The notes under the pieces were generated by a model. The model was given only the letters and a program-made list of their open reading frames with translations, made no database searches and was not told where the DNA came from. DNA of 64,000 nt from positions 62,744,001 through 62,808,000 of the forward strand of contig OZ260661.1 of assembly GCA_965285935.1 (NCBI GenBank), given 5' to 3'. How positions within the stretch are numbered: the first letter of the stretch is position 1; each line of letters starts with the position of its first letter. A program made the translations under genes and the position numbers. Origin of the DNA: Ophelia neglecta (taxonomy: Eukaryota). Below, piece after piece: positions 2,816-60,977 of the stretch.

Positions 2816-2884
2816 CCAAGAAAAATGAGTTGGTACTGGGTCTGCCTGGGTGACACAATTCAACCCGTCCTTCAACCTGCAATG
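2816..2884 (+). CDS. TIA1: Candidate alternative 69-nt exon of the TIA-1/TIAR gene (PRKMSWYWVCLGDTIQPVLQPAM)
   Basis: Perfect branch point TACTAAC at 2785-2791, acceptor TTTTTCTCTTTGCAG| and donor ATG|GTGAGC. Length is divisible by 3. Only the phase-0 frame is open, which is the phase needed to join exon 29632. Internal AAAATGA start at 2825. Confidence 0.6.
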
Positions 2885-3212
2885 GTGAGCCAACTTGTTC
2901 ACAATGGTGGTTCATTACCATGACTACCATTTTTGTTATACAACTTCGTTCCATTCTCCATCAGAAAATTTGAATGTGCCAACTACTTATTTTCACCTCA
3001 ATCATGGGGTTTATGAAGTGATATTAAGATATATATATACTAGTTTGGGTATAATTTTAATATAGTAGTCTTCTGTAAAAATAGCCATATATCAAAGTGA
3101 TTTTGTATTATGTGCTTTTACAGCATTGTAGATAATTTGGAACTTAAAGATAAAACGTTAACAGGGTACAACTTTGCATTTTTGCGTGAGTGTGTGTTTT
3201 TGTGTGTGTGGC

Positions 3213-3244
3213 GGGGGGGGGGGGGGGGGGATAGGGGGGAGGGG
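3213..3244 (+). repeat. Poly-G tract (G18 then G6 and G4), potential G-quadruplex
   Basis: Read directly from the sequence, preceded by a short degenerate TG repeat. Confidence 0.85.
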
Positions 3245-4187
3245 TAGAATCTTCCATTTACTTAACTGAAGCAAAATAGTTTGTCATGTATGTAGATCTT
3301 ATTACTTTTTTTGATTAAATATATCCCATAAATAGTTTTATAGAAATAATGTGTGTATCAGTATGCCCAAATGTCAGCCTTAAGTCCTAAAGACCTGCTG
3401 GGGAGAAACCCTGGACCTCATTTTGCATTGCTTGATGGAAAAAGCTGTCTGCTGTAATGCCTGTGTGCATGACTTCAATAAAGGCAGCATGAACCACAGC
3501 AACTGTGTGATTTGTAGTTCAATGCAATAATCAGCACAGTTAGGGCAAGTGAATTTGCATCCAACACGCTGTAGGGTATTCCATCAATGGGTTTAGCAGC
3601 ATTCTGTAATAAAGTGTGGCATGCAAAGATTGGCCTTATTCCTGCAAAAATGTTCCACTAAAGAGAGGAGAAACCTGCTGCTAAAATCATTTGTCAGCCT
3701 GGTGATGAGAAAAGCTCACCATTCAAGGCGATAGGGTAGAATTTATGTTGTGTGACATTAATGCATGCATTTAGCTAGGTAATGTTTCTTAAATGAGGCA
3801 TATCACAGCATTTCAGCTGTTTAAGGATCTTAATTAGGTCATGGTTAATTAACCTGTCTCTCGTTAAAAGTTATGGATGCATTTGTGCCATGAGGATAAA
3901 GCTTCAACTGGAATTTGAATGATGAAAGAGGGGGATGCCCTCTTCTCTTAAGTCTTAATTAAGCGAGTTGACCCTCTTTGCATGCAATATTTCTAGTCTC
4001 AGGATTCATGTGTCTTATGTTGTGGTGATGCATACATGCAGAGTGTTTCAATAAAGAGAGTCTATTTGACCAGCAGATCATAGCTGACTTGGTCCCTATT
4101 TATGCCAAGATGTCGCTGGGATAATTGAGGAAGAAAGTGTTACAGATGATATCACTGAGCTAATCTGGCATGATATATTAGCAGAAT

Positions 4188-4747
4188 CAATCATCATCAT
4201 GACCCAGCATCAATACATGGCATACTGGCCAGGTTTACAATCCTCATCCTGACCCAGTATCAATGCAAGGCACACTGGCCAAGGTTTACAATCATCATCA
4301 TACCCAGTATCAATACATGGCACACTGGCCAAGGTTTACAATCATCATCCTTACCCAGTATCAATACATGGCACACTGGCCCAGGTTTACAATCATCATC
4401 CTTACCCAGTATCAATACATGGCACACTGGCCCAGGTTTACAATCATCATCCTTACCCAGTATCAATACATGGCACACTGGCCCAGGTTTACAATCATCA
4501 TCCTTACCCAGTATCAATACATGGCACACTGGCCCAGGTTTACAATCATCATCATACCCAGTATCAATACATGGCACACTGGCCCAGGTTTACAATCATC
4601 ATCCTTACCCAGTATCAATACATGGCACACTGGCCCAGGTTTACAATCATCATCCTTACCCAGTATCAATACATGGCACACTGGCCCAGGCTTACAATCA
4701 TCATCATGACCCAGCATTAATGCATGGCACCACTGGCCCAGGTTTAC
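4188..4747. repeat. 51-bp minisatellite, about 11 copies
   Basis: Unit GGCACACTGGCCCAGGTTTACAATCATCATCCTTACCCAGTATCAATACAT; central copies near-identical and terminal copies degenerate. Confidence 0.97.
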
Positions 4748-7700
4748 CCCAAATGTTCTGAATATATAACAAACCAGTTTTTTTGCCAACTGATCACCAA
4801 GTGCTATTTCATCAGTTGCTTCTGAATTTAAAAATTGTGTTGTGAAGGAAACTAGCTTTCAATGGGCCAATGATGTTTGTCTTTTGGTAATTCATGTTTA
4901 TCCCTGTTTTTTAAGTGGCCTAAGTCAAAGCATGTGCAGATTTAGTTCAAAGGTTCTATTACCTAATAAGAAAACTACCAAATACAAAAAATAATGGTAC
5001 ATATGCTCTGCTGATCTGTTTAAAGGCCATCTGACTTGTGCTAGTAGGCTCCATGTTTTGTTACATCTGGTAACCACAAACTTTATGCCCTAAATAATCA
5101 CATGTGGTTTATAATAGCTCAGACCTTCAAGTATTATACTAACAGTTTATTTATTTCAAAGCCTAAATGCAATTGAATTTTTATGACCAACCTGATACAG
5201 TAAAAGGTGTACCAGCTGTTTTGTAATCAATATCTGTTGGGATGCAAATAGGCATTAAAACAAATAAAAATTAGACATGATGACTCAAAATGTGTAATGG
5301 GCTTTCGTTATGAAGATGGTGAAACACAACTCGGATAATGCCTGCTGTGACTTGCATGGCAGTTCATACATATACTCCCTCTAAAAAAGTACATATCATG
5401 TGTTAATGTGTTAATTGAGTTTTGATAAAACAGAAGCCATTGTACAGTTGTAGTTATTGAAATTTAACTAATTTTATTATTTCTAAAATCAAGTTTTATT
5501 AATTTTTTTTAATCAAAATTAAAGTATACTTTGAGCTTACCTATTAAAACCATTCAGAAACAAATATAGTTCTGAAGATGTGTTTGTCATGTGTAAACAG
5601 GTGTATAGTTTGCTTATGTTAATAGTTTAATGAATAAAAATCAATATAATCTTTTATCAAAGGAACATTGAAAGTTGACATTTAAACTGTTAGTTTATTT
5701 TGGCAACAACCGATAAACTCTAACCAATTACCAAAGGATTGTTAAAAACTTAGTGGAAAACATGCCAATCTTGTTCTGTTTTCTACTCACAAAATAACAG
5801 ATAATCTCAGATAATCTCATTACAATGTATTTCAGATTATTGTTATGTTAATCAGTTACAAGATAAATGTACATTGACTGAGGCAGTGAACCATTTTGAT
5901 ACTACTTGCAGCAGTTAATCAGAGAAATGCAGAACAATGGCACCTTTTTATATAGACTTTAAAGCTTTCAGAGCCAAAAGTCTAGGAAATTGAAACTAAA
6001 GACTGTATCAATTTGGAAAACAGGTGACATTTCTTTCTACTGGTCTCTTTGGGTTGACAAGGCACATATATATGTTGTTTTACTTGGGGTTTTACTCAAG
6101 AGGCTTTATATCCAAGTGCACTACCTTTGCAGTAAGTGTATGGCTATCGACCAAGCTTACCTGTGGAGACACAGCACTTAAAATAAGCATACCAGTAATA
6201 CCCAAATATATCTGAGTTACTGCACAACTTTTTTGATCTTTGTTCAAGGGCAAATATCTACATAATGCTCAATACCTACCTGCAAAGGAAAATGTATGTG
6301 AAACAAAACATGAACATGGAATTATTATAATTAAGTTGTGTTAATTGAACCAAATATTTGATGATTATGAAGTAACCAAAGATCAAGTCCAAATTATACT
6401 GTAGTAACTTTATAGTTGGGGAGTGTATGATTTGGAATTTGGAGGTGATGTTGATTGACAGTTTCTCCTGTCCTTTTGGCAAGGTCCCAGCCTTAAAGTT
6501 ATCACTGTTTTAGTAGGATTTTTTCAAATATTATTTAGGAGGTATAAATAGGCTCTAGAACGCTGCTTGTCACCCGATTGATGAGATTTGAATATAGAAG
6601 GAGGCTAGGCGACATGTGATAGTCTAAGCAGAAAATGAGCTGCCATGTTAAAAGCCTTCTCTTGAGTTGCTCTCTCCCAGGAGAGGAAGTCTTCACACTG
6701 TCTGAGTCCTTCTCTCCAAAGTGTTTGCAGTCACCTCCTTTTACTGGCTCAGCAATGGGGTAACCAACCACTTGTTTGCAAACTCTCATTAAACATCTCT
6801 TGTTGGATTTTTAGGATTAAACTTTTTGGCCAATTTACTTCTACATAGCTGATCAGGAACACTCCAAATTCTTTTTCGTAAGATAATCTGCGTTTATGAT
6901 TGCTGAGATGTTGTTATCTCTAACAACAGGTTTTGTCTCGGACTGTTTTTTTTCTGTCCTTTGTCACACTAAATTTGTGTGCTAATCAAAATCTTGAGTT
7001 ATGATCATCTTGGCAGTAAATTGATGATGGTTTTGGCATGTTTAACTGTAATATACAGTCTGGCTTCATTTGCTTTAAGCCATTTTGTTGTTGTTGCTAA
7101 GTCAGTAATTTCGGATGCACATGCCTAAGAGTCATTCTCAATGGGCTTAACATAAACAAATTGCTTATTACATAATTCAAACTGGAACTACCGATCAGAA
7201 GGGAGATACGAAATATAGTGTCACTGTGGGCGCAATTCCTTTGTGTGATGCTCTATCTGTGGTGTCCCAACATGTTTTATGGGAGTGATTTGAAAGAAAT
7301 AATAATGAATGTTAAAACATGTAGGTCTACTCCTATGAAAAATGCATAGACTACCATACAATATAGATTATTGTCTCTTAAAATTATATTGACACAGCTT
7401 TGAAGTCACGGGAAGCTAGCATATTGACCTATCTACATGTTGCACTGAGAATTCTTTTGCTCACATCCATTATTAACAGGTTAATCTCACATTTCTCAAA
7501 AGGCTAGATAATGTATGTACATATCAAAGTGATTTCCCGCGACCCAATGCATTCAGACAAATTCACTGCCTGTGATATTTATGGTGGCTCCCCCATGTAC
7601 AGACAACACATAATGTGACGGTGGGCTTTAAATAGTAAAAGGCATATTGCTTTATAACTTATTTATTTTTTGTATCAAAGACATTAATCAAAAAAATTTT

Positions 7701-10700
7701 TTTAATTAAAATAGTTTTACCCTATTCTTACTTAGTCTAATATAAAAGGTCCCGTGTTATTCGTGAGAAAGCCTGTTCAAATATGGGTATATATGTAGGA
7801 ATTTCTTTTCAAAATGCTGTTTGGGTCACATTGTTATTGAAATATATAGAATGATGAAAAATTATTATTTGGATACAATTTCTTTAATATGAAATTATTG
7901 TACATTCATGTGCATGTACATGAACCTTGTGTATATACAAAACCCAGATAGTGCCCAGACTGTAGAACAAATTGTGTGGGAAAACTTTCTTTGAAACAAA
8001 GTTGTTTTAATATGATTCTGATGGTTCTTAGTACCAGAATAGAGGTAGCCACTGATTAAATGTGATTTTATCTCAGATAAATTTCAGATCACCTTGAGAA
8101 GTTATTACAGAAAATACAATTCAACGTGCATGTGTATGGAAATTTAGTGAAAAAACAGTGAAATCGTCTGACTGAAGCCGCATGATCATTGAAGAGTACA
8201 TAACATTGTAGTTGTAATAATGATAATATCATGATATAAAAACTTACTTATAATTAACAATTGGAAAAAGGGTCATATAACAATTTATATCTTGAATTCG
8301 AAATTTACTTCTATTTCATCATATTTTATTGATTAATACATTAATAAATATTTTCATTAGATGACGGTGTGCATGGAAACACAAGGCACTCAATAAACTG
8401 TACATGTATTGACCAGTGCACACATTAGATATGGCTGTCAATTTAAATAAATTATGACCACCTTTCTGTAAAGTTATTACTAGAATGTATTGGCTATGTG
8501 GCAGCAGCAGTCCAAATAGGAAGGCACATGTATATTTGGTTTGGTGGGATATTTATGTAGAGCCTAGAAACATGGAATTGCTGTAAGCTGATGAGCCATC
8601 TGGTGTTGGTAATACATTATACAGAGGTCTAATGTAAGCTGAACAATATCCTGTCCTTTGTGACTGGCCCACCTGTGGCCATTGATGTGTTACATATGTG
8701 ACCTCATTAAACAGGCCTTCCAATAATAAACCCATAACCATGAGCATTTATATTGGTCGTTTATGATGATATCAAGAAAAGAAATGGTAATGGTTTTCTC
8801 TAGATTGTTGGTTGGTATTGACCAGAGCAGCGACTTGGATGATCCCAAAGATTGCTATCATCAGTGTTTATTCTGTTGCAGCAGTAAGTGCAGGAGAGCT
8901 CGTCATATCATATCAATTAATACAAATTGATATATTGTACTGTAAAATACAATCATTCCCCGACAAAGCCCCAACCAAATGTGAGCAATGATAAGACACA
9001 ACCAATTAGTGATTAAATTACCAATGAATTTATCATTCTCGTTGTGCTGTTGAATTATCTAGTGATCCATTGCCTACTACGGGATGATTCTCAAAAGTCC
9101 TTTTTTAAGATATTGTCACAACAAACAGGATTGATCTTGAGCAGGCCCTCTATGGACAGGCCTGGCCATTTATCAGTGTCTTGTTACCATCAAAGCAGAC
9201 CAAATACACACATTGGTCCATAAAACATGCCATGTTTAGTTTAAAGAACTACTGATTGGTTTTGCTGGCTCCTTTTGAGCCCATTTAGGATTCCAGGCTT
9301 AAACCCCAGCATTTGAATGCAGTTGAATTAAATTATAAAAGTGGAAAGTGGGCTATTGTGGATGGTATTGATCTACTAACAGTATTCATGGCCCATTTTC
9401 CCCATCATTCAGATTAAGTGGCAGCATTTATTATTGCAGCCAGGTTTCGGGCTGAGTGTTAAATATTTCCAATGCATTAATTTATTTTTGAGTGATAAAC
9501 CTTTGAGTGGAATCGGGCTTGTTGAAGTCCATGGTTTGTACATTGATCCTGTGCCATTCTTGTTCTTTGGGATGGCTCATTTGCACCAAATTTATGACCT
9601 CTGTGGCTGCAATAGGGCTTAGTGCAAAGAGAAAGAGCGATCGAAACACTGATTGCACACTGTGTCACTAAGGCTGCACAGCCAGTGGACCTGCCCCCAT
9701 CTCCTGTGTAAGCATGAAGAAATTCTGTGTCCTTTGGGCCCAGTGGTGCATGACCTTGGACTTGGTCGGAACCTAGGACAGCCATGGCTGCTCAGCACTG
9801 GCAAATGATTTCTCTGAATGGTATTGGCAACTGCCTCCCTGCCCCTGCTCATACATTGCAATGGGAATCATCAGGGGTAATGGTGCTTGGAATGTGAATT
9901 TGGGGTTATGACGAGCCCTTTTGGTGCCATCTTAGTTGCCAATGTCCGAAGCAATTTATCAAGCTGTGTAAGCAAATATTATGTGGCACACCATTGCCAG
10001 AAGCTACGTACTTGAACAACTGACTGGAGACAGAGTGCTATGCACACTTAAAAAAATGTATGCCATCCTTGATGTGGTGGGCTGATCCAATTTGAGTTTT
10101 CAAAATATGGGTCACATTAGAAGCATTGGTACTGCACAATTGTCTGTTTGCTAGATTTGTCTCAGAGCTCGCATGCTGTTGTGTCATTTAACGCACATTC
10201 TATGTCTGATCTAGTAAGGAAATGGAACTGTTATGGGAAAATCCAAGCTTATCTGGTTAAATTGGAGAACTGCAGTGCTGCTCTGGCCTTCTGTAATTGG
10301 CAATAAATGGGAACATGCCTTGCCTGCATCTGTTTTGTTCTTGTTATCATCGCCACAGTTGATTGGCTAAGGTAATGACTATCAGTGTTTTAGAGGGTTA
10401 TGCATCACCCTGTAGGACAATGGCCACAGATAGGCTGACTGGGGTGGGCTGCAGCTCCTCGATAGCCGCTACAATCTGACTCTAATGGCAGGTTTGCACG
10501 TAGAATGCTCTATATATCAGCGTAATGTTACTGATCGATGAGGTCGCAGAATGCTGACCTTTACCTTGATAGGGTCCTTTCAAGTAGAAATTTGTAAAAT
10601 AAGATACTGTGTATATTAATCCAGCCCAAGAGTAAGAAACATCAATCACAGCATTGAATGCAGCAGGCTAGAGGTAAATACATTTGCCAGGTCCCCTTGG

Positions 10701-12111
10701 AGAAAAAATATGCAGCTGACTTTTGAGTTAAATATCCAAACTTTCACCTTCTTTTATACTGAGTTGGTTAGATTGACTCAATTCATGCAAAAGGCAGGGA
10801 GACACAGCGAGATGTGGCATCCTGATACTCAAGTCATCTGATTTAGCGTAAAGGAAATTGGCCCCTTTTGGATGAAGGTCATCTCATACTTTTCTTACAT
10901 ACAGAACATTCTGACAGTGCATCAAATAAATCATATATTTTTTCGTGTATTTCAAATGGGATACATACAGATAGTCGAAAAGTTTACAAATATTTCTATT
11001 TCTCCCAACATTTGATTTCTTTAGGTAGGTTAGTTATCCCTAATTTTAATTCTCCTAAGTGTCTAACTGTGATTAGAAATAAGTCAGAGTAGTATGAAAA
11101 GAAAATCTGTTGCAACTCACACTTGCCCTTTTTTTCTTAACTGTTAGGAGCACAGCATGTTCAAAGGAATATGCCCCCCCCCCTCCCCCTGCCTGGCTCT
11201 CCGAGTCATTTGGGAGTAAGATAAAATATATGTATCCCTTTTTTTTACTGCAGTTTCTATAAATTTGATTTTGTGAACAACATTATTATAACCATTTAAC
11301 AGGTGACTCAGGAAACCTCAGTTTTCAGGATGGCCATTTTTGATTATACTGGAGGCCATCAATAAATTTTATTTATTCTCTAAACCTTTTTTTTTACGTT
11401 AAAACATTGAATTTTATGGCACATTAAAATGCTGATAAAAACTGAAATAGTACTGTCACCAGAGCTGAAAAACATAATACTAAATAATGCAAGATTCTAA
11501 TATTAGCATGATCATTTCGGCCTAATTTCTGATGAGAAGAGGGAGAAGCACACACACTGTACACTAAAGACCTTAACCTTGTTGTTGTAGTCGGCTGGAG
11601 ACTATTTACAAATTTGACATTGCCATTATTTGTCGAGTTTTATAGGCAACCTTTAAAAAATAATATCAGCCAACTGCATCTTGGTAAAGGTCCCCTCATT
11701 GGCATGAAATGGCAGTTCTTCTCCCTGGTATTTGGATTTAAGATTGTGCACACATTCGTAGAAAGATATCATCATGCCTAGCTTTGAAAGTTGATTGAGA
11801 GTTCTTTTCCTCTTTCACTTTCTTAAATCCAGTAGGAGCCATTGTGAGGGATAACAATCTAGGGATAAAGCCTTCTTTCACCATTCTTTCCTGCCCGTGT
11901 TACGAGATGGATTACAGCTCTGCCTGCTCCTCGTATCACTGTAATTAGCGTTTGTCAAATCAAGGCCGGCAAGGTTTGGTAACGAGCCCAATGTAAAGCT
12001 GGTGCCCATAAATTGAAATGCAATGATGAGTGACTGGAAGAAGTAAAAAGCATGTGATTTACCGCCATTGATGGCAGAGATGGAGAGTCATGTGTTCTCT
12101 TTACATTTCAG

Positions 12112-12165
12112 ACTCCAGCCCTGAGCCCTCTGAGCCTAATGAGCTCCCCTCTCCTGACACCAAAG
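12112..12165 (+). CDS. TIA1: Candidate alternative 54-nt exon of the TIA-1/TIAR gene (TPALSPLSLMSSPLLTPK in phase 0)
   Basis: Acceptor TGTTCTCTTTACATTTCAG| and consensus donor AAG|GTAAGT. The 54 nt are open in phase 0 and GC-richer than the flanks. A second frame is also open. Confidence 0.6.
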
Positions 12166-15100
12166 GTAAGTCAAGCTTCTAATGCTGGCTAATGTTCTGT
12201 TTAGCTGAATTATGGTCAATAAAATACCATATTCCCCATTTGCTGTATTTATACATTTCATTCATTTGTTGCTCCGATTTCCCCCACAAGCTTTATGCTT
12301 TATGGCCCAACAATTAATGACCTTTATATAATTTATTGTAATTTAGATCAATTTATTTGATTTTATATCTTACTTTTATTGTATATCATTAATTCATTAT
12401 GTTTCTTTTATTTCCAGGTACTAGTCATGAATCTGCTTTTGTACCATTTTAACATTCTCATCAGTCACAAAATCTGTAATCTTAAAGCAGATTTATTTAG
12501 GACTTAGATTTTGCACCAGCTGGTAGACTGAGGCAATATAAACCAGTTTATCTGCCATTTTTGAGATGTTCACAATTCATAGTTTAATGAGAGACCTTAG
12601 GAATTCCTGGTGGAAAGAGTCTGACTTCAGTGCCATTCTTTAATGTAACCACAGTTGTCCTCTACCATTTGCTCACCAAATATAGTTAGTTGGGTGAGTG
12701 GATTCAATGCACAGAGAGTCGGTAGTTGTGAAAATAGTACATCATCTAATATAAAGATTTACATGAGATTCAAATATGAGGCCTATCAGTGGTTGGTTTT
12801 TTAAGTAGTTTTATTTTTGAAGACTTCTTTGCTGGCATTCTAACAAGAAATAACTGAAACCTGACTCAAAGTGCCACTGTTCTTAAGTTGAAAGTGATGT
12901 TTTCTTTTTTAAATACCCATTGCTCCTGCCTATGTAACCACCCTGCTGTTAACTTGATCTTACTTTTTTGTGTTGGGAGTTTCGACTGGCTTTTTGCTAG
13001 GACACATTACCACTGTTACGGAGAAGTGGCATGTTAGGAGTGGTCATGCAACGGACCAAGTCATCTAAGTGGAACTGAATTGCCCAGCAGAGTTTCCTAG
13101 CAGTCGTTCACCCTAATATTTATTCCATGTATCCGTGTTATGACCACTTTGCCCCTCTCATGGTTGGATTGAAATGCCTTCTTGTCACTGACTTTCATAT
13201 TAAGTGTAGTAAATCCAAAGTACTGTAGAAAACCAGCTCAGGCCAGTGATCCAGTGCCTTAGATGTTTCTTTATGGCCAGTTGCTTGAATGAAATTGAAC
13301 ATGAGCAATAGTTGTCTCTACGCAATTGTCTTATTTAAACCCTTACCAGACCTTAATAAATATAAAACCACTACAATAAAATAAGGAGGTGTGCCATTGG
13401 TGGTAAGTTGGATCCAGTTGGGCCCAGCTCGAGGTAGGTGATCCGATAGCGGTCAGATATCGATTGAAGTGATGTCGGGTTATGTGGTCAGGATCACTGG
13501 CATTGCACAGGTCACTGTCACTACCATTGTGCTCAACTTCTGAGCCGCTAAAACAGTCTTAACACGCAGAACAAGAAGGCTCATAAATAATAAGCCGGAG
13601 ATGGGATATTGCTCGGAATGATTGACAAATTGTTTGACCTTTGTCTTCAACCCAATTTAAGGGTTTGATTTTGTTGAAAGTCAAGTAGTCTAACAAGGGG
13701 TCAGCCCCCTTTTAGCCCTTGGTACGGTTGTTATGACATAAAGTTCATTGTTGTGAAATATTGCCATATCTGCCTGGAATTCAGTATGCAATCAAGCCTT
13801 TATATACTGTGTGTCTGAACTATTAATAAACTATTTATGTTGCTCTGGCTCCTTAGGCCATTGAAGTCTATATGAATTAAGTGTAAAAACCTGTAAGAGA
13901 GAAAGTTGTTTTGCCATTATTTTATCTGCAATGCATTTTCCTGTTGGTGTCATTATGCTCAAAGCTAACCATGCATATGGTAAATGTCACTTGTGTAGCC
14001 ACATCCCACAATGACTACCTACTGGTTTTCAAGGCATTCCCCAGCCTTTTGGAAAAAAAGGCATTTGTGTGAGCATAAAAGTCCCATGGAATTCCTTTAG
14101 AGCTTCGAGGATAAAGTTGGACTTTCACACTTTTTACTATCAAGTCATAGCTCCTTTTACCTCAAGACATAAAGTGTACCAGGAAATGGCAATGTGTTCT
14201 TTCCGGGGATGATATATTACATCCGTTAAGGTTAGCCAGTGAAATGTCACCTGGCTGAGTGGAGACTATGTGAGTTTAAGAGATGCTCAGCACTTACTGT
14301 ATAGAGTGGGCAACATTTCAATAAACGTGTAAATAAAGATTGTGTTATGCCTCTACCTATTTTTGTGTAATGTGATATTAGGATTACCATAGGTTGTATG
14401 AGCATAATTTCTTCCATTGGCCAATACTAATTTCCTTTTACCATTGGGCCAAATTGGCACAAAATCCCCTTTTAATTGAAGCTTGCAATTTCTTTAATGT
14501 AATCAAGGAGTGGCACCAGTTTGAGTAGCAGCTAAATACTTTCCTGATGAAGTATAATGACCACCGAAGTGCATCTAAATGCTCTCTGAGTGAAGTTGAT
14601 AAATCATTGCAGGATGCCAGCTTTCCTGAAATCATAAAACATATTTTGTAATGATTGTTGGATGCTGCTAGTGTGTCGCTTTCATGGGAAAAGACCCCAA
14701 TTCTTGTTGGTATAGAAAATTGAGGTAAATGGATTTCAGCCGTAAGAGCTGCACATTACTGACTGCTAATAACTTATGATGTGAAACATGCAGGGTACCT
14801 GCCATTTAGTCGCTGAATATTGTCAAGAAGAGGAAATTATATAGTTTTGCACTACTTAGAAATTGCCAGAGTTGGAGCTCTCGATGCCATTGCATGAAAA
14901 CTAGCTATAAAAGGCAAGTAGATTGACATGATATAATATCAAGTTTTTACTTGCAAGTGTAGTTAATTATTTGGCAAGTAGGAATGCATCTTGTATTATA
15001 GATAGCTTGACCATACAATATGGCTGCTAATGAGGGAACCGAGCAGAGTTTTACCAACAGTTGATACATAGTGTTGCACAATGGATAATGTCATTGCGTT

Positions 15101-18100: not shown

Positions 18101-19026
18101 ATAAAACAATGTAATGCTGTCATTACTTGTTAGCTTGAGGCAGCCACAAGTCTATTTTTTTCCCCAAAAACCCTGTCACAGAGGACCTATTTAGTAAGGG
18201 ACACTTTTGACAAATCACATCTATATAAGTGTCAATTTGCAAGTTAGTGAGCATCAGATAATATTTGTAAGAAACAGATAGGACTTAACAACAGTGTTTA
18301 ACAAATTAAAGTGGTTCCTTGTTGAACTCATTGCTGAGTGTTGTCTGATTGGTTAGAGGTACAGCACGCCAAAACCAGACTTGAAATTGGCAAATATAAT
18401 CATGCTCTATAAAAAAAAAGAAATGCAAAGCTTGCCTGTAGATCGATCATGGTAGTTAAGTTGCCTCAGTGTGGGCAACACACAAGTCATTTTATCAGTA
18501 GCATTCCCAGCAAGTTCATTGTAAAGTCCATCATGAAGTTGCCTAATTTTCTCGCATTGATATAAATTAGTGGTTTTTACCCCTATTGACAATTGGCCGT
18601 GCAAACTGTTTGCTTGCCTTGATAAACACAAGCTTCATCTGGTTGGATCAATGAATATTGCATCACCAACATTTTCACGTAGGCATGCAAGTCTGCCATC
18701 TGTACAATTTATCGTGGACATTTAACAGATGCACAGCGGTGCTAGTCACCGAAACCAATGATCCAATTAATGAATGAAAGGAAAATCCTCACTCGACCCA
18801 GGTTTAGTGTGTTAATAATTTAATGTCAAGCAGAAGTAAATATAATGTAGGTCAGTGAACTAGTAGGGCACAATCCTAAAGCAATCTTTGAGCCCTCCCG
18901 GTCAGGTTCTGAAGTTTTCGAAATTTACATGCAACATGTCAATAATCACACCAGGAAAGAATAGTGACTGGGGTCAAGGCCTAATTATGAAACAAGTAAA
19001 TGTACATGTGACTTTCTCTGGCCTTT

Positions 19027-19074
19027 GGGGGGGGGGGGGGGGTTGGAGCTGGGTTAGGGGTGGGTAGATTAGGG
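19027..19074 (+). repeat. Poly-G tract with downstream GGG runs, potential G-quadruplex
   Basis: G16 followed by TTGGAGCTGGGTTAGGGGTGGGTAGATTAGGG. Confidence 0.8.
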
Positions 19075-22000
19075 CCTGTCCTTTAGTTTCATGACCATAC
19101 AAGATAACCATACCCCCTACCCTTTATCATTGACCCTTGACTGTAAGGACCCTTGTTTCTCTTAAATGACTGACCAGGTCCTCCTAAGAAAGGGTCAAGC
19201 TAACTTCAGACGTTGTCGACAGAAAATACCAACTCCTCACAACCTGATTTATAAACATCTTTGGCTTCTAAAATAAACTGATATTGACAAAAAGATTCAA
19301 AATACTTGCAATGTGAATGAGTACACACAACAGGGAACACTTATATTCATGCTCCAAAGGAATTTTTCAATCAGATTTGACTCTGGAATGCTAGATTGAT
19401 TTCTCTTGACATTTAATGGCTAACCTTGATTTTGCTTACAATCAATTAAAAGGGCATTTACCCCCAAACACATTGGCCATGTATCCAGTATGATTGTGGA
19501 TACGATGTGTGGTCTACTTAAGCAATGTCAGTTATCATTTACCGAAAGTCGTTATACTGCCCCGCCTGATAAATCTTCCGATCTGCAGTATTTTACAAAG
19601 AAAACCACAACTTTGTTATAACAACTTTTGTGCTGAAGCATGGTTGCTAAAACAGATTATTGGAGATAGATGGCCTAGAAAAGTGTTTCTTGCCCTTAAC
19701 CGCTATGTAATATTGCAAACACATTTGAGTTATTGGCTCTTGGTGAGAGGCGCTTTACTTGTCAAACCCTTCACAGCAAATAATAACTTGCAGTGTTTAC
19801 TGCAAGATACCTGTTCTCAGGCTTTGGACAGGTTAATACCCAAATAAGTCTGTTTCTGAAAGAGAAAATTGCTCCACATCTTAAGGCTTGTGAACCACTT
19901 GAATCAACTAGCAGCATTTGAGAAGGCAACCTTTCCTCTTTCCTGTGTCTGGCTTTTAGAAAAGACAAAGTAGGTGTGACATTAGTAAACTGGTCTGCCA
20001 GTGTTCATCTCTAGTTGTGCTCATTTAGAAGCCATTGGAGACTGGACAACGATTTTGCTAAATGCCAACTGACATGAGACCTAATTGAAGTAATGTGTGC
20101 TAGTCTTGCTAGGGTAACTATGACCAGAGTGGGTTGCTCATTGCTTCATCCTATCTCTTAGTTTTGTTGATGGAGAGAGATGTATTTAAAGGATCACTTG
20201 ATTATGTTTTTCTATTCTTTGGTACCATTTCACAAATGTCAGCAGAATTATTCATTTGCAGGCAATTTGGTAAAATGATCATGTCTGTTAATCTTCAACA
20301 TGCTTTATTCCCCATTTTCATGCATGCCATACTCATTACTTTGGTTTTTGCTTTGGGAAAAGCTAAGCAATAAATTTTCTTTGTATAACAAAGGTCAAAG
20401 GCCCCATGGGTGTCACTTTAACACATTGTAGCCTTGCAGGCGTTTCTTGATATATATATATATATTTGTGGAAAGGAATATTACACATTGTGTTGATATT
20501 TGCCATTGTACTATTAATCATCTGGACATTTTATAGAACCATGCTATAGAATTAAATGTTAATGATAGTTTCAGTATATAGAAGGAAATTTATACATAGC
20601 AATTCTTTTTGCCTATTTCCACGGTAGAAGAGCATGTTTCACTTGAATGGCCCGAGTAGAAGGAATTGATGTCACAGCTGCTGACCCATGACATGGGTTG
20701 GCTTCCTGTGAGTGACTTCTGGTCTGTGCTGTGACATTACGGTATAATTATAGGCTCCACGGCGGTCTGCTGCGGTCTGCTCCGGTCCTGCTAGCAGGCC
20801 ACACGGTGACATCCTGGAGCCTCCTTCATGGACATGAGCTGCAGAGTTAACTTGATGATTATCTTGTAGCTCCCAGTTGGCTAACTTCCAGCCGGGTGTA
20901 ATATGTCATGCTTTCATGCATCTTTATCACTCAATGTGGTAAGGCAAAGTTGTAAAGAGCATTCCTGCATATGGATAAGGCATGTAGATATTCCAAATGC
21001 TGGCTTTCAATCAATGCTTTATGGCATCCTCCCTCGAACCTCATGTTCTTCCTTTTTAAATGCATCTGGATGTGTGTAAGGCAGCAAACTGGACTCCAGT
21101 ACAAGATTATGGTGCTTAGACTTTGATTTGGAAAACTTCTTATGTACTGGGGTTAAAAATAGTCTGATTGTGGTGATGCACTTTTTAAAGAAATGACTAA
21201 GCTGCAGAATTGAACTATGTTTAGAAAAGAAGCTAGTGTGAATTGAATTTGGTGGTCATACATTGCAAGTAGTGCTCTACAACATTATGCTTTTATTGGG
21301 CTAGAAATCAATTTTGCTCAACAGCCAGCAGTCATGAATGTCTGACAAATAGTCCCCCAAACAGTGTGGTCTTCATGTTGGTTAGGAACCTGGGTCAAAT
21401 GGTATCTGACTATCAAACTTTAATTTTCTCTCAAATGAGAAAGCTTTGTTATGAGCAGTCTAGAATTGTATGCCAAACCACCTGTATTTGGTGCTTCTGA
21501 TGCAGAAACAGCCCAACTGAGGTTTTGCCTACTGTGTGAATGCATGATATGAAAGCTTTCATTTTCCCCTTAGGGCAGAAAGTGTGGTGTGTGATTTGAG
21601 CTGACCTGAAATTGCAGGTGTTTTTTTGAGATTCTTTTTGTAGAGACAATTGACTTCAAGAAAAGTGTAATTCCCACATGACAGTAGACTGTGGGATAAA
21701 TTGAGCTGTGTAAGCTAACACCTGCCTGCTTCAAGGGAATGAGAGATGTCACAATCTGACTGGGTTAGGATAGCCAATTACGCTGTGGATTGTGGCCAGC
21801 TGCCTCAGATTGTGGTCCGTCTTGGAGACGTCTGCCTATTGGGCTATCGACACATGACCTGTGAGCACACACACCATTCCTTTGTAGAACTGGATGGTGA
21901 TCTTGTGATAATGGTGCTCCAACCTCTCCAAGATAACCCTACTGTAATACCGAGGTCTTAGCAAGGCCTGTCTGCGTGTAGTTTGTTGGCGCCAGACACC

Positions 22001-24944
22001 TCAATGGTGTACCTGAAGAGAACAAGAATGAATTATCAAGGTGTGTTATAATGGCTGCTGCCAGGAAAGGACAACCACCTTTCATGAAAAACCCTTTTAT
22101 GTAGTAGGCTTGTCTGTGGCCGGTAGCAGGTAGGCTTGGCACTGCTCTGCTCTGCTCTACGCTGCTCTTTATCCTGCTAATTGATACAGCAGAGAAGGGG
22201 TCAGTGCCTGTTGGGTCCCATTTGATAACGCCTGTAACCTCCTTCCATTGCCAACAAAGAAGTCTTCCCTCAATCAATTAAGGTTGTATTCACTGTGAAA
22301 TGAAATGGAGTACATGTCTGTCACTTTTTTTTAGAGAGCAGGAATGAAATGTTATCTGTGCAAGTACTTTCACACTCTCGAGTTTCAGCGAGAAGAAATT
22401 CATTGAAACCTTAGTACCAATTGGAATGCCTCCATTTTCTATTCACCCTGACTGATGGCCCACTTCATGTGAATTTATGGCCTTACATGTATATTTTTCT
22501 GTACTAACACTATGGTGTGCAGTGGGTCATTAAAACTAGCCCTTGAGATTCTGTAGCATTAATTTAAGCTTTAGAGCCAGGAGAGAGCGGCCATTTCCGC
22601 AGTATCTATTTGCCTTTATGGCATTTCTGCTAGTGGTCATTATAGATGTAGCACCTGGTTCCTGCTTTGTGTACCTGTTGTTGATCAATGCTACATAGAA
22701 AACAGTTTATTACTCTGCAGACTGGTGGCTGTGCAGGCTGAGCCGGCAGCTGGGCCCGCTTGCCCATACATTTTTGTAGGTGTGATGCACATATCAAGAG
22801 AAGCTGTTGTTTAAAACACTGTTGAAGGTAGAGGAAAAAAGAGAAAAAGAACAAGGCATAAATTACTTGTTCTTGTGTCAGAATATGAATTCTGTAACAA
22901 AAGCAACTTTTATTATTGTCTCTGAAGCCATTTGCCTCTTAAAATAAATTCACATGAGGACAATCATGTACTAAACGCCTTCTGTTGGAAAATTTTAACC
23001 TGTGCCATGTATTGAGCGTTATGTTTCATTGTGTACTTTGTACATTTATGGTACATCTAATACTTGTCAGGTTGTTAATGTTTAATTGCTTGGATTAAGG
23101 ACGTCTAAGATTTCTTTTGTCTAATGGGACAGAGCAAAACAGGGATCACATATTATGCAAGAAGGAAGCTTTGCTGAAAATAAGGATGCAGATTGTTGTA
23201 TATAATTTACATGAACATGAATTTTCTAGGTTTAAATGCAATGGTCATATTAAACACAGCTAAATGCTTATAGGATTCATCAAACTAAAGGCAAATATAA
23301 GTTTTTATTCTAATATTTTTCCCTATTGGGGAAAGTTAATAGTGGAAGATGTGGAAAAATCTTTTTCTCATCATTTGCTCAATTTCTCCAGGGGAATTGC
23401 AAATTATAGTAATTAAAAGCTGTACATCTTATATTTAAATGTCAGTGATGTAGTATTAAACTTAATTATATGGAACAATGAATGCTGTTGAATACCAATC
23501 ACGTGATTTCTACTGTCCAATCAGCTAGTTTGGTGTTAAAGTTAATAGGTCTTAAGAAAGGTAGATGTTAGTATAAAACTCATTAAAGTTAAATTTCAAT
23601 AGATTACATCTTTTCCAACAGAACCTAGATTAACTCTATGAAGATATTTGATATTTTTATTTGCTTCAAATTTTAAGTGAAATATAGCTATAGATATTAG
23701 AACACATAGACATGATACAATTTATGTGTGTGTGTGTTTGGGGGAAATGTTTTGTACTATTTTTACCAAATGGTCTTTACAAGAACAGAAATGATAGGAA
23801 CTTTTTTGTCAAAAATTGCTATGACAAAGGCCAGTTCAGTGTTGTTCCTCCTCCCTTGTAGGACTCCAGTCATCTTGTACGAGGTTATCTGACAATCGGA
23901 GGATTCTACAAGAATCAATAGCTAACTGAAAATTTGGTTTGCACCCTCAATAATTGAATCATTGACTAGGTTTTTGAATGCAAGCCTGGCTGATGTAGTC
24001 CATAGAGGCGGGAATGATCTTGTCTGCTGCCTAATTGGATGCATTTTGTTACAATCTGTAATGGTCATCAATAAATATTTGAAAGGGATGAGAAAAATGC
24101 ATGTTGATTTGCATAGAGAATGCACAGGTCGGTTAGCTTGCCGCTCATTAGCATGTGTGTTTAGTTATTGCCATGACATTGAGCGTCAGCGGGACAGGTG
24201 GCCGGGCAACCTCTGTATTGTGGTTTGATCTAAACTGATGGAATTTTCATCATTTACTAATTTCCAGCTCCTGAGGGAAATTGTTCATGACCATTTGCAT
24301 TCATTAGTTTCCCACAATTCCTATTGTCTGCCATATTTGAGCAGATGAGATAAACACCCAGACCAGGCTGTCAATTGGATGGTATAGTCTAGTGTTTATC
24401 TTCCTGCCACATTGTCTGTACAGCAGAAAACATCCCTCTGTGCTATCGATATAAAGTTGATACCGGAGATTGATCCAAAATAACGGCTAATACTTACCCT
24501 GCCTCTAGCTTGGTTATAGTAGAAAGATAATTTTTTAAAGGTGAATCTTCTTATATCAATATTCAGTGGTAGGTTGAAGGAACTGAGTATATAGAAGCAA
24601 TTTAAGATAAATGCAAATATATGTCGGTGACTAGGGAGTTTAATATGATAGGGAAAATTCTCAAGATTGTCACCAACTGCTGGAGACAGATCTTTCTGTA
24701 TATATGGGTCAGTGTCTAGTGAGCTTTGGCAAGGAAAAATGTCCAGATTGTCACCAACTGCTAGGTATGGAGTTTTCATTCGAGCAGCTATTATCCCACT
24801 GCTTGTTCAGCTATTTCTTGCCGTATTTCCATCAAAAAGAAGTTGTCATTGATTTCTGCTTGAGGGTAGGAAAACACTCGCTGTCTGTGTGCAACTGGAG
24901 AAAATAGATGACATTTCTCAGCTGGATTCACATTGACAGCCTGA

Positions 24945-25019
24945 AGTCAGAGGGGCAGTCAGAAGGGCAGTCAGAGGGGCAGTCAGAGGGGCATTCAGAG
25001 GGGCATTCAGAGGGGCAGT
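24945..25019. repeat. 12-bp tandem repeat (CAGTCAGAGGGG), about 6 copies
   Basis: Direct reading; variants CATTCAGAGGGG and CAGTCAGAAGGG. Confidence 0.93.
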
Positions 25020-25720
25020 GAGGACAGTTCTCCTAATATCAGGCTGCAGTGGAATGGCTATGTTTGAGTAAGACCCACTCATTGATCCCACTTGGGATTA
25101 TCATTGCACATTATATAGTACTAGGCAGATGTATTGGCTATTGTGTAATGAGAATTGTCCAACAGTCAGCGATATCAATATTTCATTTAAGCTTGAACAC
25201 AAAAGAAACTGTTTGTTGCATTAACAATCCTTCTTTACGGGTAAGTCATCAATTACCCATGTTAAACTACTTGGAAGTTGTGATGGGACGAGGCAGATGT
25301 TGCCTTGGCAGGCTGTATGATCTGACCGGCCATTGCTCATTTTTGGACACAATGAGAGTGTCTCGGAAGAAATAAGCCGCAGTAAAACAATCTTTTTAAG
25401 GATGACAGTGGTGCCAGAAGTCGGTGTTTACATTCTTGAAGCGTAAGCACCTGTTTCATGTTACCGCTGTCCAAGTCTGCCCTTGCCTTGAAGTACGAGC
25501 CGGCGTGCAATGCATTATAAATGAAGTAGAAGATTGCGGCACAGGACATAATTATCAATAGTAATTTCATATGATCAAAATCTGGATCTTGCCATTGATG
25601 TCTTTCCTTTTAGCCAGTCTTCTGTCCATAATATTGAGATCTGAGTCGCTGACAGAGGTGATAAAACAAATTGAATCATTTTCACCCAGTTGCTTAATTT
25701 CATTACTAAATTCATGTATG

Positions 25721-25768
25721 ATGAGATGCCAGTGTATTAAAACCATGAGATGCCAGTGTATTAAAACC
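25721..25768. repeat. Perfect 24-bp tandem duplication
   Basis: ATGAGATGCCAGTGTATTAAAACC occurs twice in tandem. Confidence 0.9.
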
Positions 25769-26039
25769 ATTCAGGGCACATTATGTAAGCCTTGACCTTT
25801 TCGGTAAGCATTGGTTTCACATTTTAAGCATAATGCCTTTTATGGTGTGTTAGGACACACAAGTTTTACGGTCACACCCCATAGATCTTGACAGTGTTGC
25901 CCACACTGGCAGGCTGCTGTGGAGGGACGGCATGTGTTCATATTGTCTCTGTCAATGATAATCATATTGAATTAATCATTAGACTCCAGAGGGGTAATGT
26001 GTGCACGAGTTGTCTTCTGCTATGCAGGATAGCACATGC

Positions 26040-26376
26040 TGTCGGCAGCGAATAAGCATTGCACCATTGCCAGATCGTCACACACACACAGTGGTTGGTT
26101 GGCTCGGAAGTGAGGTGGAAGTGAGGCTGGTCCCATTGCACCGCGGAGGATAAACAGAGTCGGAGTTTAGGTGCTGTGAGTTATTGATGCAGAGCTGCTT
26201 GTGGTGTGTGGTGGTGTAGTAACGCAGCCAGTCCAGTCGAGTAATATCCAGTTCAGCTTTTCCCTTTAAAGGAGAGAGACTCGTTGAAGACCTCTAGGAG
26301 GAGCACTTTTTCTAAGATTGTACACTTTGTACCCACACGCATGCACATTCCACGCACTCTCACCGACCGCTACAAT
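26040..26376 (+). promoter_or_regulatory. CpG-rich candidate internal promoter / 5' UTR
   Basis: About 19 CpGs counted by eye in 26041-26460, against about 2 in the AT-rich background stretch 5041-5460. Tandem ETS-like GGAAGTGAGG at 26106-26126. YY1-like AATATGGC overlaps the ATG at 26377. Confidence 0.5.
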
Positions 26377-26475
26377 ATGGCTGCTAACGTGATCCTACCA
26401 GCAGAGCCTTTGGTCTTTTATACTGTCAGTCCGCCGCCAGTGTGCCTACCACCCCCGCCGCCCATTTATCCAGTG
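26377..26475 (+). CDS. TIA1: Candidate alternative first coding exon of the TIA-1/TIAR gene (MAANVILPAEPLVFYTVSPPPVCLPPPPPIYPV)
   Basis: ATG in good context (AATATGG), 33 codons of protein-like Pro-rich sequence, and a phase-0 donor GTG|GTGGGT compatible with exon 29632. An in-frame upstream ATG lies at 26341. Confidence 0.62.
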
Positions 26476-29400
26476 GTGGGTACATGTTTCTTGGATTTGG
26501 GGGGTGGGGTAATATGTATGTGTATCAGTCTGGAGTATCTCTTCTGTAGTCTGTCTAAGTTGTGTTGCCTCTCACATCGGCAAGGCTCCGTGGAGCTGTC
26601 CGAAGTGGATGCTGCAGCAGGCTCTGGGCATTTGGATTATTGGTCTCAGTAGCGGGTGTCTGCAATAACCTGAGCTCTCTTGCAGAGATCTGTTATGTGA
26701 CATGGCCTTGGAGAGGATAACAGCAGATCTCAGTCTCAAGACACATGACACACTCCAAGGATGAGTATTGACATCCACTATGCTTAATCATTTCAAATTT
26801 TTATATTTAACCCTTTTTTACATAGAAGTCTGCATCTACTAGTGATTCACTACTCTCTCCTAGTATCCATGGGTAAAAGGGTTAATCTGTTTTGGCACTA
26901 ATTAATTATTCTTTCTCTCACATTGCAGATGCTGCCACCATACATAATTTGTTTTTTATCGTGTGCCTAATATTGCCTTTTGAATATATTGATTACCCTT
27001 ATTGATTTGATTTTCATCTAATTATTGTTTCAGTATGTATATATTGATATTTAAATTTGGCTATTTTAAATTTTAACTAGACCAAATGTATTTACCAGCC
27101 CATACACACTCACCGCATTTTTTGTGAAAATATTTGTTTTTGACTCTCATTTGTGATTCTATGATAGTGTGGCAGACGATCTGTCTGTCGAGCCAGTTGT
27201 TATTAGATGTATTGGAAGGTAAATTGAATTCCCAACAACCATTGATTGTATTTACCTGCAAAGTATCAAGTGATGTAGCCAGAAGGCCCACTGTGTGCTT
27301 TCTGGCATGTCAATGAATGAATGACAGGATTATCTGGAGTGAATGTGTAAAAGGCTAGACTGGATGGAAGTCTGGAGTCACCACAGTGTGCTGTGTGCAA
27401 TGTGAATGAAAGGTGTACAAAAGACCTATTTGTCAGAGTGCCCCATGCAAGCAACACTTTTACAATACAGCTGTTTCTAACTTGTTAAATTTATCAGGTA
27501 ATTAGTGGGCCATTGTTTATAAATAACAATTGAAAGTCATCAAGCTGGACACAGCTGAAGTCGGGGCTGGGGTGGTATAAAGCATGCCATTAAAGGACAA
27601 GATAAAAGGGAAATGAAGTGTGCCTGGCACATGCTCAGGGCTTACCAAGTCCAGGGGAGGAGGCCTGCTGGCTGGGGATTGGCCACACGGTGGTGTTCTC
27701 CTGGTCAGGAGGTGTCACAGGGAAGTGTCACTGGGTTAGTGGGCCTGGGAAAAAACAAGCCATATAAGGAACACAGCCTTTAGACATGCCTTAATGTTGT
27801 AACCTGTCTCCACTTGTCCCACTGACTCAAACTAAGTCAATGGGGCAAGATGTATTGTATATTAAACATTTTCTCTTTAGTTTATCATTGTTATTTATAT
27901 TATTATTATTACTATTATTATTTTACTTTTAAATTAACTTGCATGGCATATATAGAGTATGACCATGATTTAATTAATCAATATTTTTTAATCTTCTAAA
28001 GGCTTAATAGATTTGTTTAAGTATTTAAACACCTCTTTTGGATTTCATTTTCTGCATGAATGGTGATGAAATTGAGCATGAGAAGGGATTAGACATGTAT
28101 AATAGCTACGGCTGGCATGAATATCGCAGGCCAGTATCAGTGTCATGATTGTTGATAGCAATTTGGGGTGTGCAGTGGCCAAGTTGGTGAAGAGGCTCCT
28201 CATTGATCAATGTCAGTGACTGCTATTGATTGTAGCCAATCTGATAGATTGAGGCATTTTCATATTGACTTCCCTCAATAGGAAAATGACCTCCCTCTTG
28301 GCAAATTAAATGCGCCAACTTCCAGCCCTAGGACTAATGTTGACCACTGATGACTAAATTGACGACATGGTGCTCAGAGATACCGTGTTGGCTCTGATGA
28401 GTTTGCAATATTAATGTCCCAATTTTTGTCCTGTTGGAAAGCGGCGAAGAAGTTAAGGCATTTGTTCGCTGTAGGGTAGCAGCGAAGTTAGAAGAAATTA
28501 TATTCTGAAGACACCTTGTCTGTAGTTTTGCTGATCGTGACTAGTGTTGTCCCCTGCTGAAACATTGTATGTAGCATGGAGCATCCTGCATTATTTAGCA
28601 GATCTACCCATAGGCTATTCAGTTTCCTAGCCTGAAGAAAATGATGTCCGTGTTTGCATGGGGCACGTATGAAGAGTGCACACTCGGGAGATGGCTGGTG
28701 CAATATGCTGCCATGAGAGATGAGTGTGTGGATGTGTGTACCAAGCAAAATTGAACATTGATGTTTTGTGGCTGGGTTGTGCAAACCATGAGATAATTTG
28801 CAATAATAATGCCATGTGATTTGGCCTCACTTGGTATGAATTGGTTTTGCTTTGTTTACAAAGAGCTAGTGTACATTTCATCTGCTCATATTTGACATAA
28901 ATGAGATTGTTTGTTGAGCAAAATTGCCAATCAGAAGTATCTGAGTTTGATGCTATTGGAAATTGATATAATGTTTAGCTAAATTTACATCTAGCAAATA
29001 TAAAGAAACCTGAATCAAAGCATTAAATTGCACATTATCTCTCCTTTGTATGGCAGCTCATTCTAATAAAACATTAGGATATGCCTATTCAAGTTATACT
29101 TAATTCCTTGCATTTGTACACGATAGATAATACAGCTTCACACAAATAAAAATATCATGGAAAAAGATGTTGTTTAAATTTAGTTGCCAAAGCTGTAGTC
29201 AGTAAATATCTCGAGAGACTATGTATTATAGTAGTGGTATAGGACATACCCTGCTCACACTGCCCAGTGTGGTCAGACAGTAGATCAGGGCCTGTCAACA
29301 GAGTATATATAAAATAAGAGTACAGGGCCCTTTTCTTGCTCAATTCTTGTGCAATATTACTGAATGTTTGTATGTGAAAATTAAATGATATTCTCAATTT

Positions 29401-29631
29401 TAAACACCTGTATCGCATGTAACCTGGCTACAAATAATTCAGATATACTTATGCTAAATTGACTTAATTATTTTGAATCATTTAAATTCTTCTTTTGGAC
29501 ATGCTTCACCATACTGTTTTTATAATATATAAATTTATTATCCTTGCTTTTAATTTATAAGAGATACTTTTATGGCCTTTGTTTGTATACCTTTTTTAAT
29601 TAAATTAACATGTTCTTTTCCTGTTTTGTAG

Positions 29632-29689
29632 GAAATGAAAGTGAATTGGGCCACATCTCCTGGAAATCAGCCAAAACAGGACACAAGCA
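29632..29689 (+). CDS. TIA1: TIA-1/TIAR exon: end of RRM1 and linker (EMKVNWATSPGNQPKQDTS)
   Basis: Acceptor TTCTTTTCCTGTTTTGTAG| and donor GCA|GTAAGT; 58 nt, phase 0 to phase 1. The KVNWAT motif is characteristic of TIA1/TIAL1/Rox8. Confidence 0.95.
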
Positions 29690-40244: not shown

Positions 40245-40765
40245 AACCTATCTTAAACATTAGACCCTATCTAAAACCTGTCTAAAACCTTAGACCTTGT
40301 CTAAAACCAAAAAACCTATCACACACCCTAGACCCTATTTACAACCTTAGACCCTATCTAAAACTAAAGACCCTATCCCAAACATTAGACCCTATCTAAA
40401 ACCTATCTAAAACCTTAGAACCTGTCTAAAACCTTAGACCTTGTCTAAAACCAAAAAACCTATCACAAACCCTAGACCCTATCTACAACCTGTTTAAAAC
40501 CTTAGACCATATCTAAAACTAAAGACCCTATCCCAAACCTTAGACCCTATATTAAACCATAGACCCTATCTTAAACCCTATAACCTAATAAAACCATCTG
40601 ATACCCTAAACCCAAACTCAAACCTTAGAACTATCTAAAACCTATCTAAAACCTTACACCCTATCGAAAACCCTTGAACCTATCTATAACCCTAGAACCT
40701 ATCTAAATCCTATCTTAAACTCTAGACCCTATCTTAAACCCTAGAACCTATCTAAAACCAATCTA
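40245..40765. repeat. Degenerate A/C-rich tandem repeat (about 19-bp AAACCTTAGACCCTATCTA-like units) with a higher-order duplication
   Basis: Recurring TTAGACCCTATC and CTAAAACC submotifs; block ~40286-40396 recurs at ~40431-40550. Confidence 0.9.
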
Positions 40766-60889: not shown

Positions 60890-60977
60890 AGCACTTCCAT
60901 ATATTTGTGGGTGACCTAAGTCCGGATATTGAAACACATCAGTTACGTGAGGCCTTCGCACCATTTGGACATATTTC
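60890..60977 (+). CDS. TIA1: TIA-1/TIAR exon: start of RRM2 including RNP2 ((K)[28 protein letters not shown](S))
   Basis: Acceptor TTTTATTTATTTATTCCAG| and donor TTC|GTAAGT; 88 nt, phase 1 to phase 2. The IFVGDL RNP2 motif and AFAPFG are typical of TIA RRM2. Confidence 0.96.

Follow-up and report, generated by a model that had tools for sequence, protein, structure and literature searches.

In a 64,000-nucleotide stretch of the Ophelia neglecta genome (contig OZ260661.1, positions 62,744,001 to 62,808,000 of the forward strand), hereafter called the window, three short exon-like stretches lie within one intron of a plus-strand gene resembling TIA-1, TIAR and Rox8. We propose, with a probability of about 0.8, that one of them, candidate 3 (26377-26475), is the coding part of a genuine alternative first exon whose product lacks the first RNA recognition motif (RRM1), and that the other two, candidate 1 (2816-2884) and candidate 2 (12112-12165), are pseudo-exons. 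Candidate 3 is recognized by its counterparts in related species, where spliced transcripts join a homologous peptide directly to the next exon of the gene, and by a codon pattern typical of a selected reading frame. An earlier note on this DNA had interpreted the three stretches as an array of alternative exons forming a variable N-terminus system. The sequence features on which it relied are all present, namely an in-frame ATG and a phase-0 donor in each candidate and a reading frame in each that would fit the exon at 29632; the array itself does not follow, as one exon is supported and the other two fit chance.

The region studied covers 244 kb, that is, the window together with 120 kb upstream and 60 kb downstream, in an assembly of 762 Mb; all positions are given in window coordinates, and negative values lie upstream of the window. 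The intron carrying the candidates is 68,773 nt long, interrupts the gene in phase 0 and ends before an exon beginning with EMKVNW. This EMKVNW exon is the counterpart of residues 81-99 in the canonical close relative P0156, which over its residues 10-98 can be aligned to the human TIA-1 RRM1 structures 5o2v and 6eld; therefore the exon supplies the final strand of RRM1 together with the linker, in agreement with the earlier note.

The exon at 26377-26475 and its counterparts

The coding part of candidate 3 (plus strand) comprises 99 nt, or 33 codons, MAANVILPAEPLVFYTVSPPPVCLPPPPPIYPV, and encodes the peptide MAANVILP...PPIYPV. It opens at an ATG whose context is favourable (A at -3, G at +4) and closes with GTG/gtgggt, where the slash marks the exon boundary, the donor following right after 26475. 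Relatives were sought in a representative library of 1.84 billion proteins, with the last coding exon as the query. The closest one, P0002, which originates from a seawater metatranscriptome (PMC8830328), begins with MRMTANGLCLPSEPLLLY...VMPPHVYSPITPM and continues directly into EMKVNW, with no RRM1 at its start. When its N-terminus was compared with the 244 kb, candidate 3 was the second-best place, behind the EMKVNW exon. A word search with the same N-terminus retrieved P0151, P0152, P0153 and P0154, and a word search with residues 1-45 of P0154 retrieved P0154 alone.

The protein P0154, from a related species, begins with MAANVILPSEPLVFYTVSPPPVCLPPPTGVYPL, followed directly by EMKVNW, and its N-terminus aligns with candidate 3 over all 33 residues, 28 of which are identical. 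P0154 derives from the 2,656-nt contig L020, which matches the present genome exon by exon (26374-26456, 29631-29687, 60892-60977 and then the later exons); L020 is a spliced transcript, since the matched exons lie tens of kilobases apart in this genome. In the tblastn search of P0154 against the intron (E 6e-18) the alignment stops precisely at the proposed donor, and in a six-frame search of the whole genome residues 1-33 match only 26377-26475 (E 1.3e-7). The N-terminal exon of L020/P0154 is joined in phase 0 to the E[MI]KVNW exon, which is a feature of this class of alternative isoforms, and the putative intron in the window, deduced from the same junction, would span 26476..29631 (plus strand, 3,156 nt).

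Candidate 3 is single-copy in the genome. It differs from L020 at 29 of its 99 nt, distributed as 7/1/21 over codon positions 1/2/3; 19 codons carry synonymous changes only and five residues are replaced. This codon-position pattern is that of purifying selection on the candidate 3 reading frame. A second, more distant group, consisting of P0002, P0151 and two open reading frames (ORFs), P0152 and P0153, possesses a homologous exon peptide, MRMT(A/T)NGLCLPSEPLLLY...PPx(V)YSPITPM, joined to EMKVNW. The ORFs P0152 and P0153 are located on genomic contigs of other species and continue into intron sequence starting with V, which fits the expectation at a GT donor. In addition, a 33-residue N-terminus of similar build was found in the annelid Owenia. 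The parts of the peptide that are conserved are M[AT][AT]N, LP[AS]EPL[VL][FL]Y and PPx[VI]Y. A conserved PPxY motif was considered and rejected, since the place of PPIY in the window is taken by PPPTGVY in P0154 and by PPHVY or PPQVY in the P0002 group; what is conserved is PPx[VI]Y. The proteins with an alternative N-terminus contain two RRM_1 stretches, compared with three in the canonical P0156. By this homology, candidate 3 is more than a chance product and probably serves as the conserved first coding exon of an alternative form; it was identified by orthologous transcripts and not by the strength of its sites.

Candidates 1 and 2 and chance expectation

Candidate 1 (2816..2884, plus strand) is an exon-like AG...GT pair of 69 nt with an in-frame open sequence, PRKMSWYWVCLGDTIQPVLQPAM, preceded by ...ctttgcag and ending with ATG/gtgagc. 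Candidate 2 (12112..12165, plus strand) is a pair of 54 nt, also open in frame, TPALSPLSLMSSPLLTPK, preceded by ...catttcag and ending with AAG/gtaagt. Both have an upstream pyrimidine-rich tract ending in cag, are open in the frame of their phase-0 donor, contain an in-frame ATG and are single-copy. Splice sites were scored with rounded position weights and not with a trained model, which gives a rough ruler whose standard was set by the gene's real exons. On this ruler candidate 1 (acceptor 2.77, donor 5.32) falls within the range of the real exons, and candidate 2 (acceptor 3.37, donor 7.82) possesses the strongest sites of the three.

The earlier note had looked to peptide conservation in related TIA loci for confirmation. 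When 156 ortholog segments preceding an EMKVNW-type exon were compared with the intron by tblastn, candidate 3 alone was matched, and no segment matched candidates 1 and 2. The Pfam search of the candidate peptides and neighbouring ORFs gave nothing but one chance match, below the threshold and on the opposite strand, and the Rfam search of the whole window gave no match. Two further origins were considered and rejected. A transposon origin disagrees with the single-copy state of all three candidates. A recursive splice site consists of an acceptor followed by a rebuilt donor (consensus YAG/GTRAGT), and the acceptors of candidates 1 and 2 read cag/CCAAGA (2816) and cag/ACTCCA (12112), so that neither a recursive splice site nor a recursive-splicing exon is present. 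The positive control of the copy search was a CpG-rich patch at 59700-60450 (observed/expected ratio, o/e, about 0.9) upstream of the RRM2 exon; this interspersed repeat numbers at least 44 copies, of 65-86% identity, on many contigs, including one copy cluster on contig C2 at 113.3-114.4 Mb.

Pairs as strong as candidates 1 and 2 occur 8-9 times on the plus strand of the intron and five times on the minus strand. The probability that such a pair is a multiple of three and open in the required frame is roughly 0.12, so that the two observed compare with an expectation of about one. If sites as weak as the weakest real ones of the gene are admitted, each strand has 20 in-frame open "cassettes". 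Stretches of the type of candidate 3, running from an ATG to a phase-0 donor, number seven on the plus strand and 14 on the minus strand, with 7.7 +/- 3 in random sequence. Therefore, statistics alone distinguish none of the three candidates.

That all three are nevertheless real, the intron carrying an array of either alternative 5' exons or cassettes that yields several N-termini or loop inserts in RRM1, appears improbable to us. In favour of such an array, the splice-like sites of candidates 1 and 2 match those of real exons, both stretches are in-frame open multiples of three, and strong AG...GT pairs on the plus strand number 18 versus 9.4 +/- 2.6 in Markov-random sequence. Moreover, orthologs in a barnacle (P0020), spiders (P0191/P0193) and one JGI contig (P0168) have extra sequence after helix 2 and ahead of the EMKVNW exon, so that inserts at this place exist elsewhere. 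However, the plus-strand excess arises largely from the T-rich transcribed strand (102 versus 83 acceptors and 63 versus 51 donors), the in-frame open pairs (two of the 8-9 strong ones) are near the expected number, the ortholog segments are silent on candidates 1 and 2, and an insert at either would separate helix 2 from strand 4 of RRM1. The loop inserts of 18-23 residues suggested in the earlier note thus find no evidence at this locus, and its RRM1-less isoforms with swapped N-termini are supported for candidate 3, through the spliced transcripts of relatives and the codon pattern, and not for the other two. Candidates 1 and 2 are most likely pseudo-exons, chance products such as any 69-kb intron may be expected to contain.

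Proposed transcription start of the alternative form

The putative 5' leader and promoter-proximal region of candidate 3 (26100..26376, plus strand) has a GC content of 0.50, and the interval 26001-26500 contains 20 CpG, which places it in the top 3% of 500-nt windows. A strong CpG island at this place was rejected, as the o/e of 0.61 is only moderately above the median of 0.31. The region also contains CGGAAGTG at 26105 and GGAAGTGAGG, of which only two copies exist in the 244 kb, at 26106 and 26117; these may be ETS-type promoter sites, which we regard as a lead only. At the canonical promoter (CpG o/e 0.94), the only GCGCATGCGC palindrome in the 244 kb is found at -45753..-45742, about 45 nt upstream of the start codon, and is presumably an NRF1-type site.

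In related species, the short leaders of the alternative transcripts contain no RRM1 coding sequence before the start codon (217 nt in L020, 47-71 nt in L021 and 181 nt in L022); the first ~24 of the 71 nt in L021 are, we assume, sequencing adapter. Ahead of its start, the genomic ORF P0153 has residues that match the leader of the P0151 transcript, and therefore the leader and the coding part are contiguous in that genome. Together, the leaders and this contiguity point to a separate transcription start, and we infer an internal promoter for the alternative transcript. Another related species provides a different short N-terminus (...MQTASALKQ) joined to EMKVNW (L024/P0160, JGI 3300008035); the 5' leader of L024 has no match in the 244 kb studied.

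Candidate 3 could instead be a conserved internal exon that follows the canonical 5' exons or an unseen non-coding exon, in which case stop codons in its 5' portion would close the RRM1 frame, with a restart at MAANV or decay of the transcript. We consider this rather unlikely. The modest CpG enrichment agrees with it, and so does the open frame, which extends upstream to 26245 with a further in-frame ATG at about 26341. Against it stand the leaders free of RRM1 sequence, the contiguous leader and coding part in the P0153 genome, and the purifying selection on the peptide, which would not be required of a pure poison exon. Far less probable is that candidate 3 is a non-functional relic here and that the exon is used only in relatives. 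The expression evidence does come from relatives and not from this organism; yet nothing has disrupted the start codon, the 33-codon frame or the GT donor, and the ratio of 19 codons with synonymous-only changes to five with replacements indicates continued constraint.

Several observations weigh against an alternative first exon accompanied by two pseudo-exons. The sequencing runs found for this organism are three DNA-like runs of one study, with no RNA run among them, and the splicing evidence hence comes from related species: the junction 26475>29632 is deduced from the transcripts of relatives, and for two of the three Logan contigs RNA origin is deduced from the spliced structure and not from the run record. 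The CpG o/e upstream of candidate 3 is just 0.61, compared with 0.94 at the canonical promoter. The related 5' leaders, that of L020 among them, show no nucleotide similarity to the window above that of shuffled sequences, and therefore an unseen non-coding upstream exon is possible. Finally, pairs as strong as candidate 2 are rare, with four on the plus strand and none on the minus strand of the 244 kb, and candidate 2, with its unusually strong sites, may be a species-specific cassette or poison exon.

The TIA gene and RRM1-less isoforms

The gene map combines motif scans with tblastn searches that used orthologs and blastn searches that used related transcript contigs, and all features lie on the plus strand. 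The start-codon exon (MSYKQ) is located at about -45708 and is followed by a small exon ending at about -45.59k (...EEAQPRT(L)) and by two RRM1 exons, at -45383..-45287 and at -39237..-39142; the latter encodes PGNDPYAFVEF...MNKRMCMGR and ends with ...GGA AGG/gtaagt in phase 0. The acceptor of the EMKVNW exon is in phase 0 because this canonical upstream exon closes in phase 0. The exons of the RRM1 core thus lie 39-46 kb upstream of the window (-45.7k to -39.1k) and for this reason were out of view for the earlier note. The constitutive EMKVNW exon (29632..29689, 58 nt, EMKVNWATSPGNQPKQDTS; 5' phase 0, 3' phase 1) has 72-95% identity to its orthologs in tblastn and blastn. After an intron of 31.2 kb comes the constitutive exon with the start of RRM2 (60890..60977), then further exons for RRM2 and the start of RRM3 (71481..71556, 72579..72684 and 75371..75466) and, outside the window, the last large exon from 79665, which encodes the remainder of RRM3 and a C-terminal low-complexity domain rich in Q, G and Y (...GGGGGGGASSQPQQYNQGYGQAYYSQMGYWGYPQGYNQMQQGGYMQPYMQQGYGLSGYW). 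With the last exon read through to its stop, the canonical form amounts to 1041 nt in frame and the alternative form to 99+58+88+76+106+96+377 = 900 nt, also in frame.

Exon by exon, the window and its flanks have 57-96% identity to orthologs, and P0156 matches human TIA-1 RRM2-RRM3 (PDB 2mjn) with E 3e-79. The canonical form has RRM1 split over several exons, and P0156 contains three RRM_1 stretches. By its homologous RRM2 and RRM3, its three-RRM canonical form and its Q/G/Y-rich tail, the gene is a member of the TIA-1/TIAR/Rox8 family; its nearest named relatives are lophotrochozoans (scallop, Ridgeia, Capitella, Owenia, octopus and abalone).

Several other features were observed in the region. 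The acceptor of the RRM2 exon (60884-60891) reads ttccag/AG, and use of the second AG, two bases downstream, would shift the frame. Relatives have two 3' forms (79665-81040, outside the window): L023 reads through the last large exon, for which the stop in this genome is at about 80039, and L020 and L024 are spliced from ~80016-80024 to an exon at ~80927-81039, giving a longer Q-rich tail. The introns contain minisatellites at 4188-4747 (51 nt x 11), 32444-33265 (12 nt x 68.5), 40244-40763 (units of ~19-87 nt), 44320-45499 (40 nt x 29.5, 97% match) and 55943-56140 (30 nt x 7). The 244-kb region is strongly CpG-depleted (o/e 0.39 overall, median 0.31) and has CpG islands with o/e near 1.0-1.4 at about -107k to -103k, -95k to -92k, 101k and 116k, which fits heavy gene-body methylation and neighbouring promoters.

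The proposed route to the alternative protein would begin with transcription from an internal promoter a few hundred bases upstream of 26377. Candidate 3 would supply a 33-residue proline-rich N-terminus, and by analogy with the orthologous transcripts the donor that follows 26475 would be joined to the phase-0 acceptor at 29632. Of RRM1, the product would contain one strand out of five and neither helix, and it would keep RRM2, RRM3 and the Q/G/Y-rich tail. In human TIA-1, RNA binding is carried by RRM2 and RRM3, and the two-RRM form is accordingly predicted to bind RNA; RRM1 has no significant RNA binding and is thought to aid the Q-rich domain in recruiting U1C (PMC4027183). On this analogy, the two-RRM form would retain binding to U-rich RNA and aggregation, and its recruitment of U1-C and the U1 small nuclear ribonucleoprotein (U1 snRNP) and its activation of 5' splice sites would be weaker.

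Forms of this kind are present elsewhere in the family. Of the 138 members retrieved with an EMKVNW-type exon, the canonical form accounts for 111; about 18 begin with an alternative N-terminus and lack the RRM1 core, and a few have extra sequence between helix 2 and the EMKVNW-type exon. The RRM1-less isoforms annotated at NCBI as nucleolysin TIAR, TIAR-like or Rox8 come from bivalves, spiders, ants, a sawfly, a mayfly, a tick and the annelid Owenia; examples are found in Owenia fusiformis (P0264), Crassostrea angulata (isoform X5, P0203), Tegillarca (P0210), Potamilus (P0217), spiders (P0202, P0190, P0227 and P0248), ants (P0194, a cluster of 291 members), Neodiprion (P0200), Cloeon (P0230) and Dermacentor (P0215). 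As in the window, a lineage-specific N-terminus is joined to the E[MI]KVNW exon, two RRM_1 stretches are present and the other exons are unchanged. In contrast, the N-terminal peptides are not alignable between phyla, and resemblance to the peptide of the window is confined to P0154, the P0002/P0151 group and perhaps Owenia. The literature search found no paper on RRM1-less isoforms, and the TIA reviews searched mention two main isoforms and describe only TIA-1a/b and TIARa/b.

The vertebrate isoforms differ from the form proposed here. TIARa and TIARb differ by a 17-residue insert in RRM1 (PMC9318959) and thus are, like the present case, alternative forms within the same family that alter RRM1. 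However, the TIARa insert lies between RNP2 and RNP1, arises from an alternative 5' splice site in exon 3 and leaves RRM1 complete, whereas here RRM1 is replaced. Candidates 1 and 2 do not qualify as inserts of the TIARa type either: they lie in the intron after the exon with RNP1 and helix 2 and would be separate cassettes, inserted before strand 4 at another loop. TIA-1a and TIA-1b differ by an 11-residue segment of exon 5 between RRM1 and RRM2, and also in splicing activity (PMC9318959 ref. 14, PMC4027183). They too are isoforms of a TIA protein, but the segment is a linker cassette, transcribed from the same promoter, and all three RRMs are kept. The isoform of the window therefore adds to a kind that is already annotated across protostomes but unstudied, with unrelated peptides, and does not belong to a three-exon array.

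A wider reading, which we hold to be unlikely though worth stating, is that an internal promoter before the exon of the last RRM1 strand is an ancient feature of TIA/Rox8 genes throughout protostomes. In that case, two-RRM isoforms would carry lineage-specific N-terminal motifs that redirect localisation or partners, splitting U1-C-dependent splicing from a cytoplasmic role, and candidate 2 might be a further, species-specific exon. Such motifs may include LP[AS]EPL[VL][FL]Y and PPx[VI]Y here and an R-x2-PY-like stretch in bivalves.

For the analysis of very long introns, the locus illustrates that exon-like open frames with good splice sites are mostly due to chance. TIA-1 and TIAR have been described as three-RRM proteins with two main isoforms, in which RRM1 is the domain tied to recruitment of U1-C and U1 snRNP. 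The exon at 26377-26475 suggests a natural isoform that swaps RRM1 for a short proline-rich peptide, which is under purifying selection here, and similar isoforms are annotated in several protostome phyla. If this is true, the family would possess a built-in TIA form that keeps RNA binding and granule assembly, with weakened splice-site activation.

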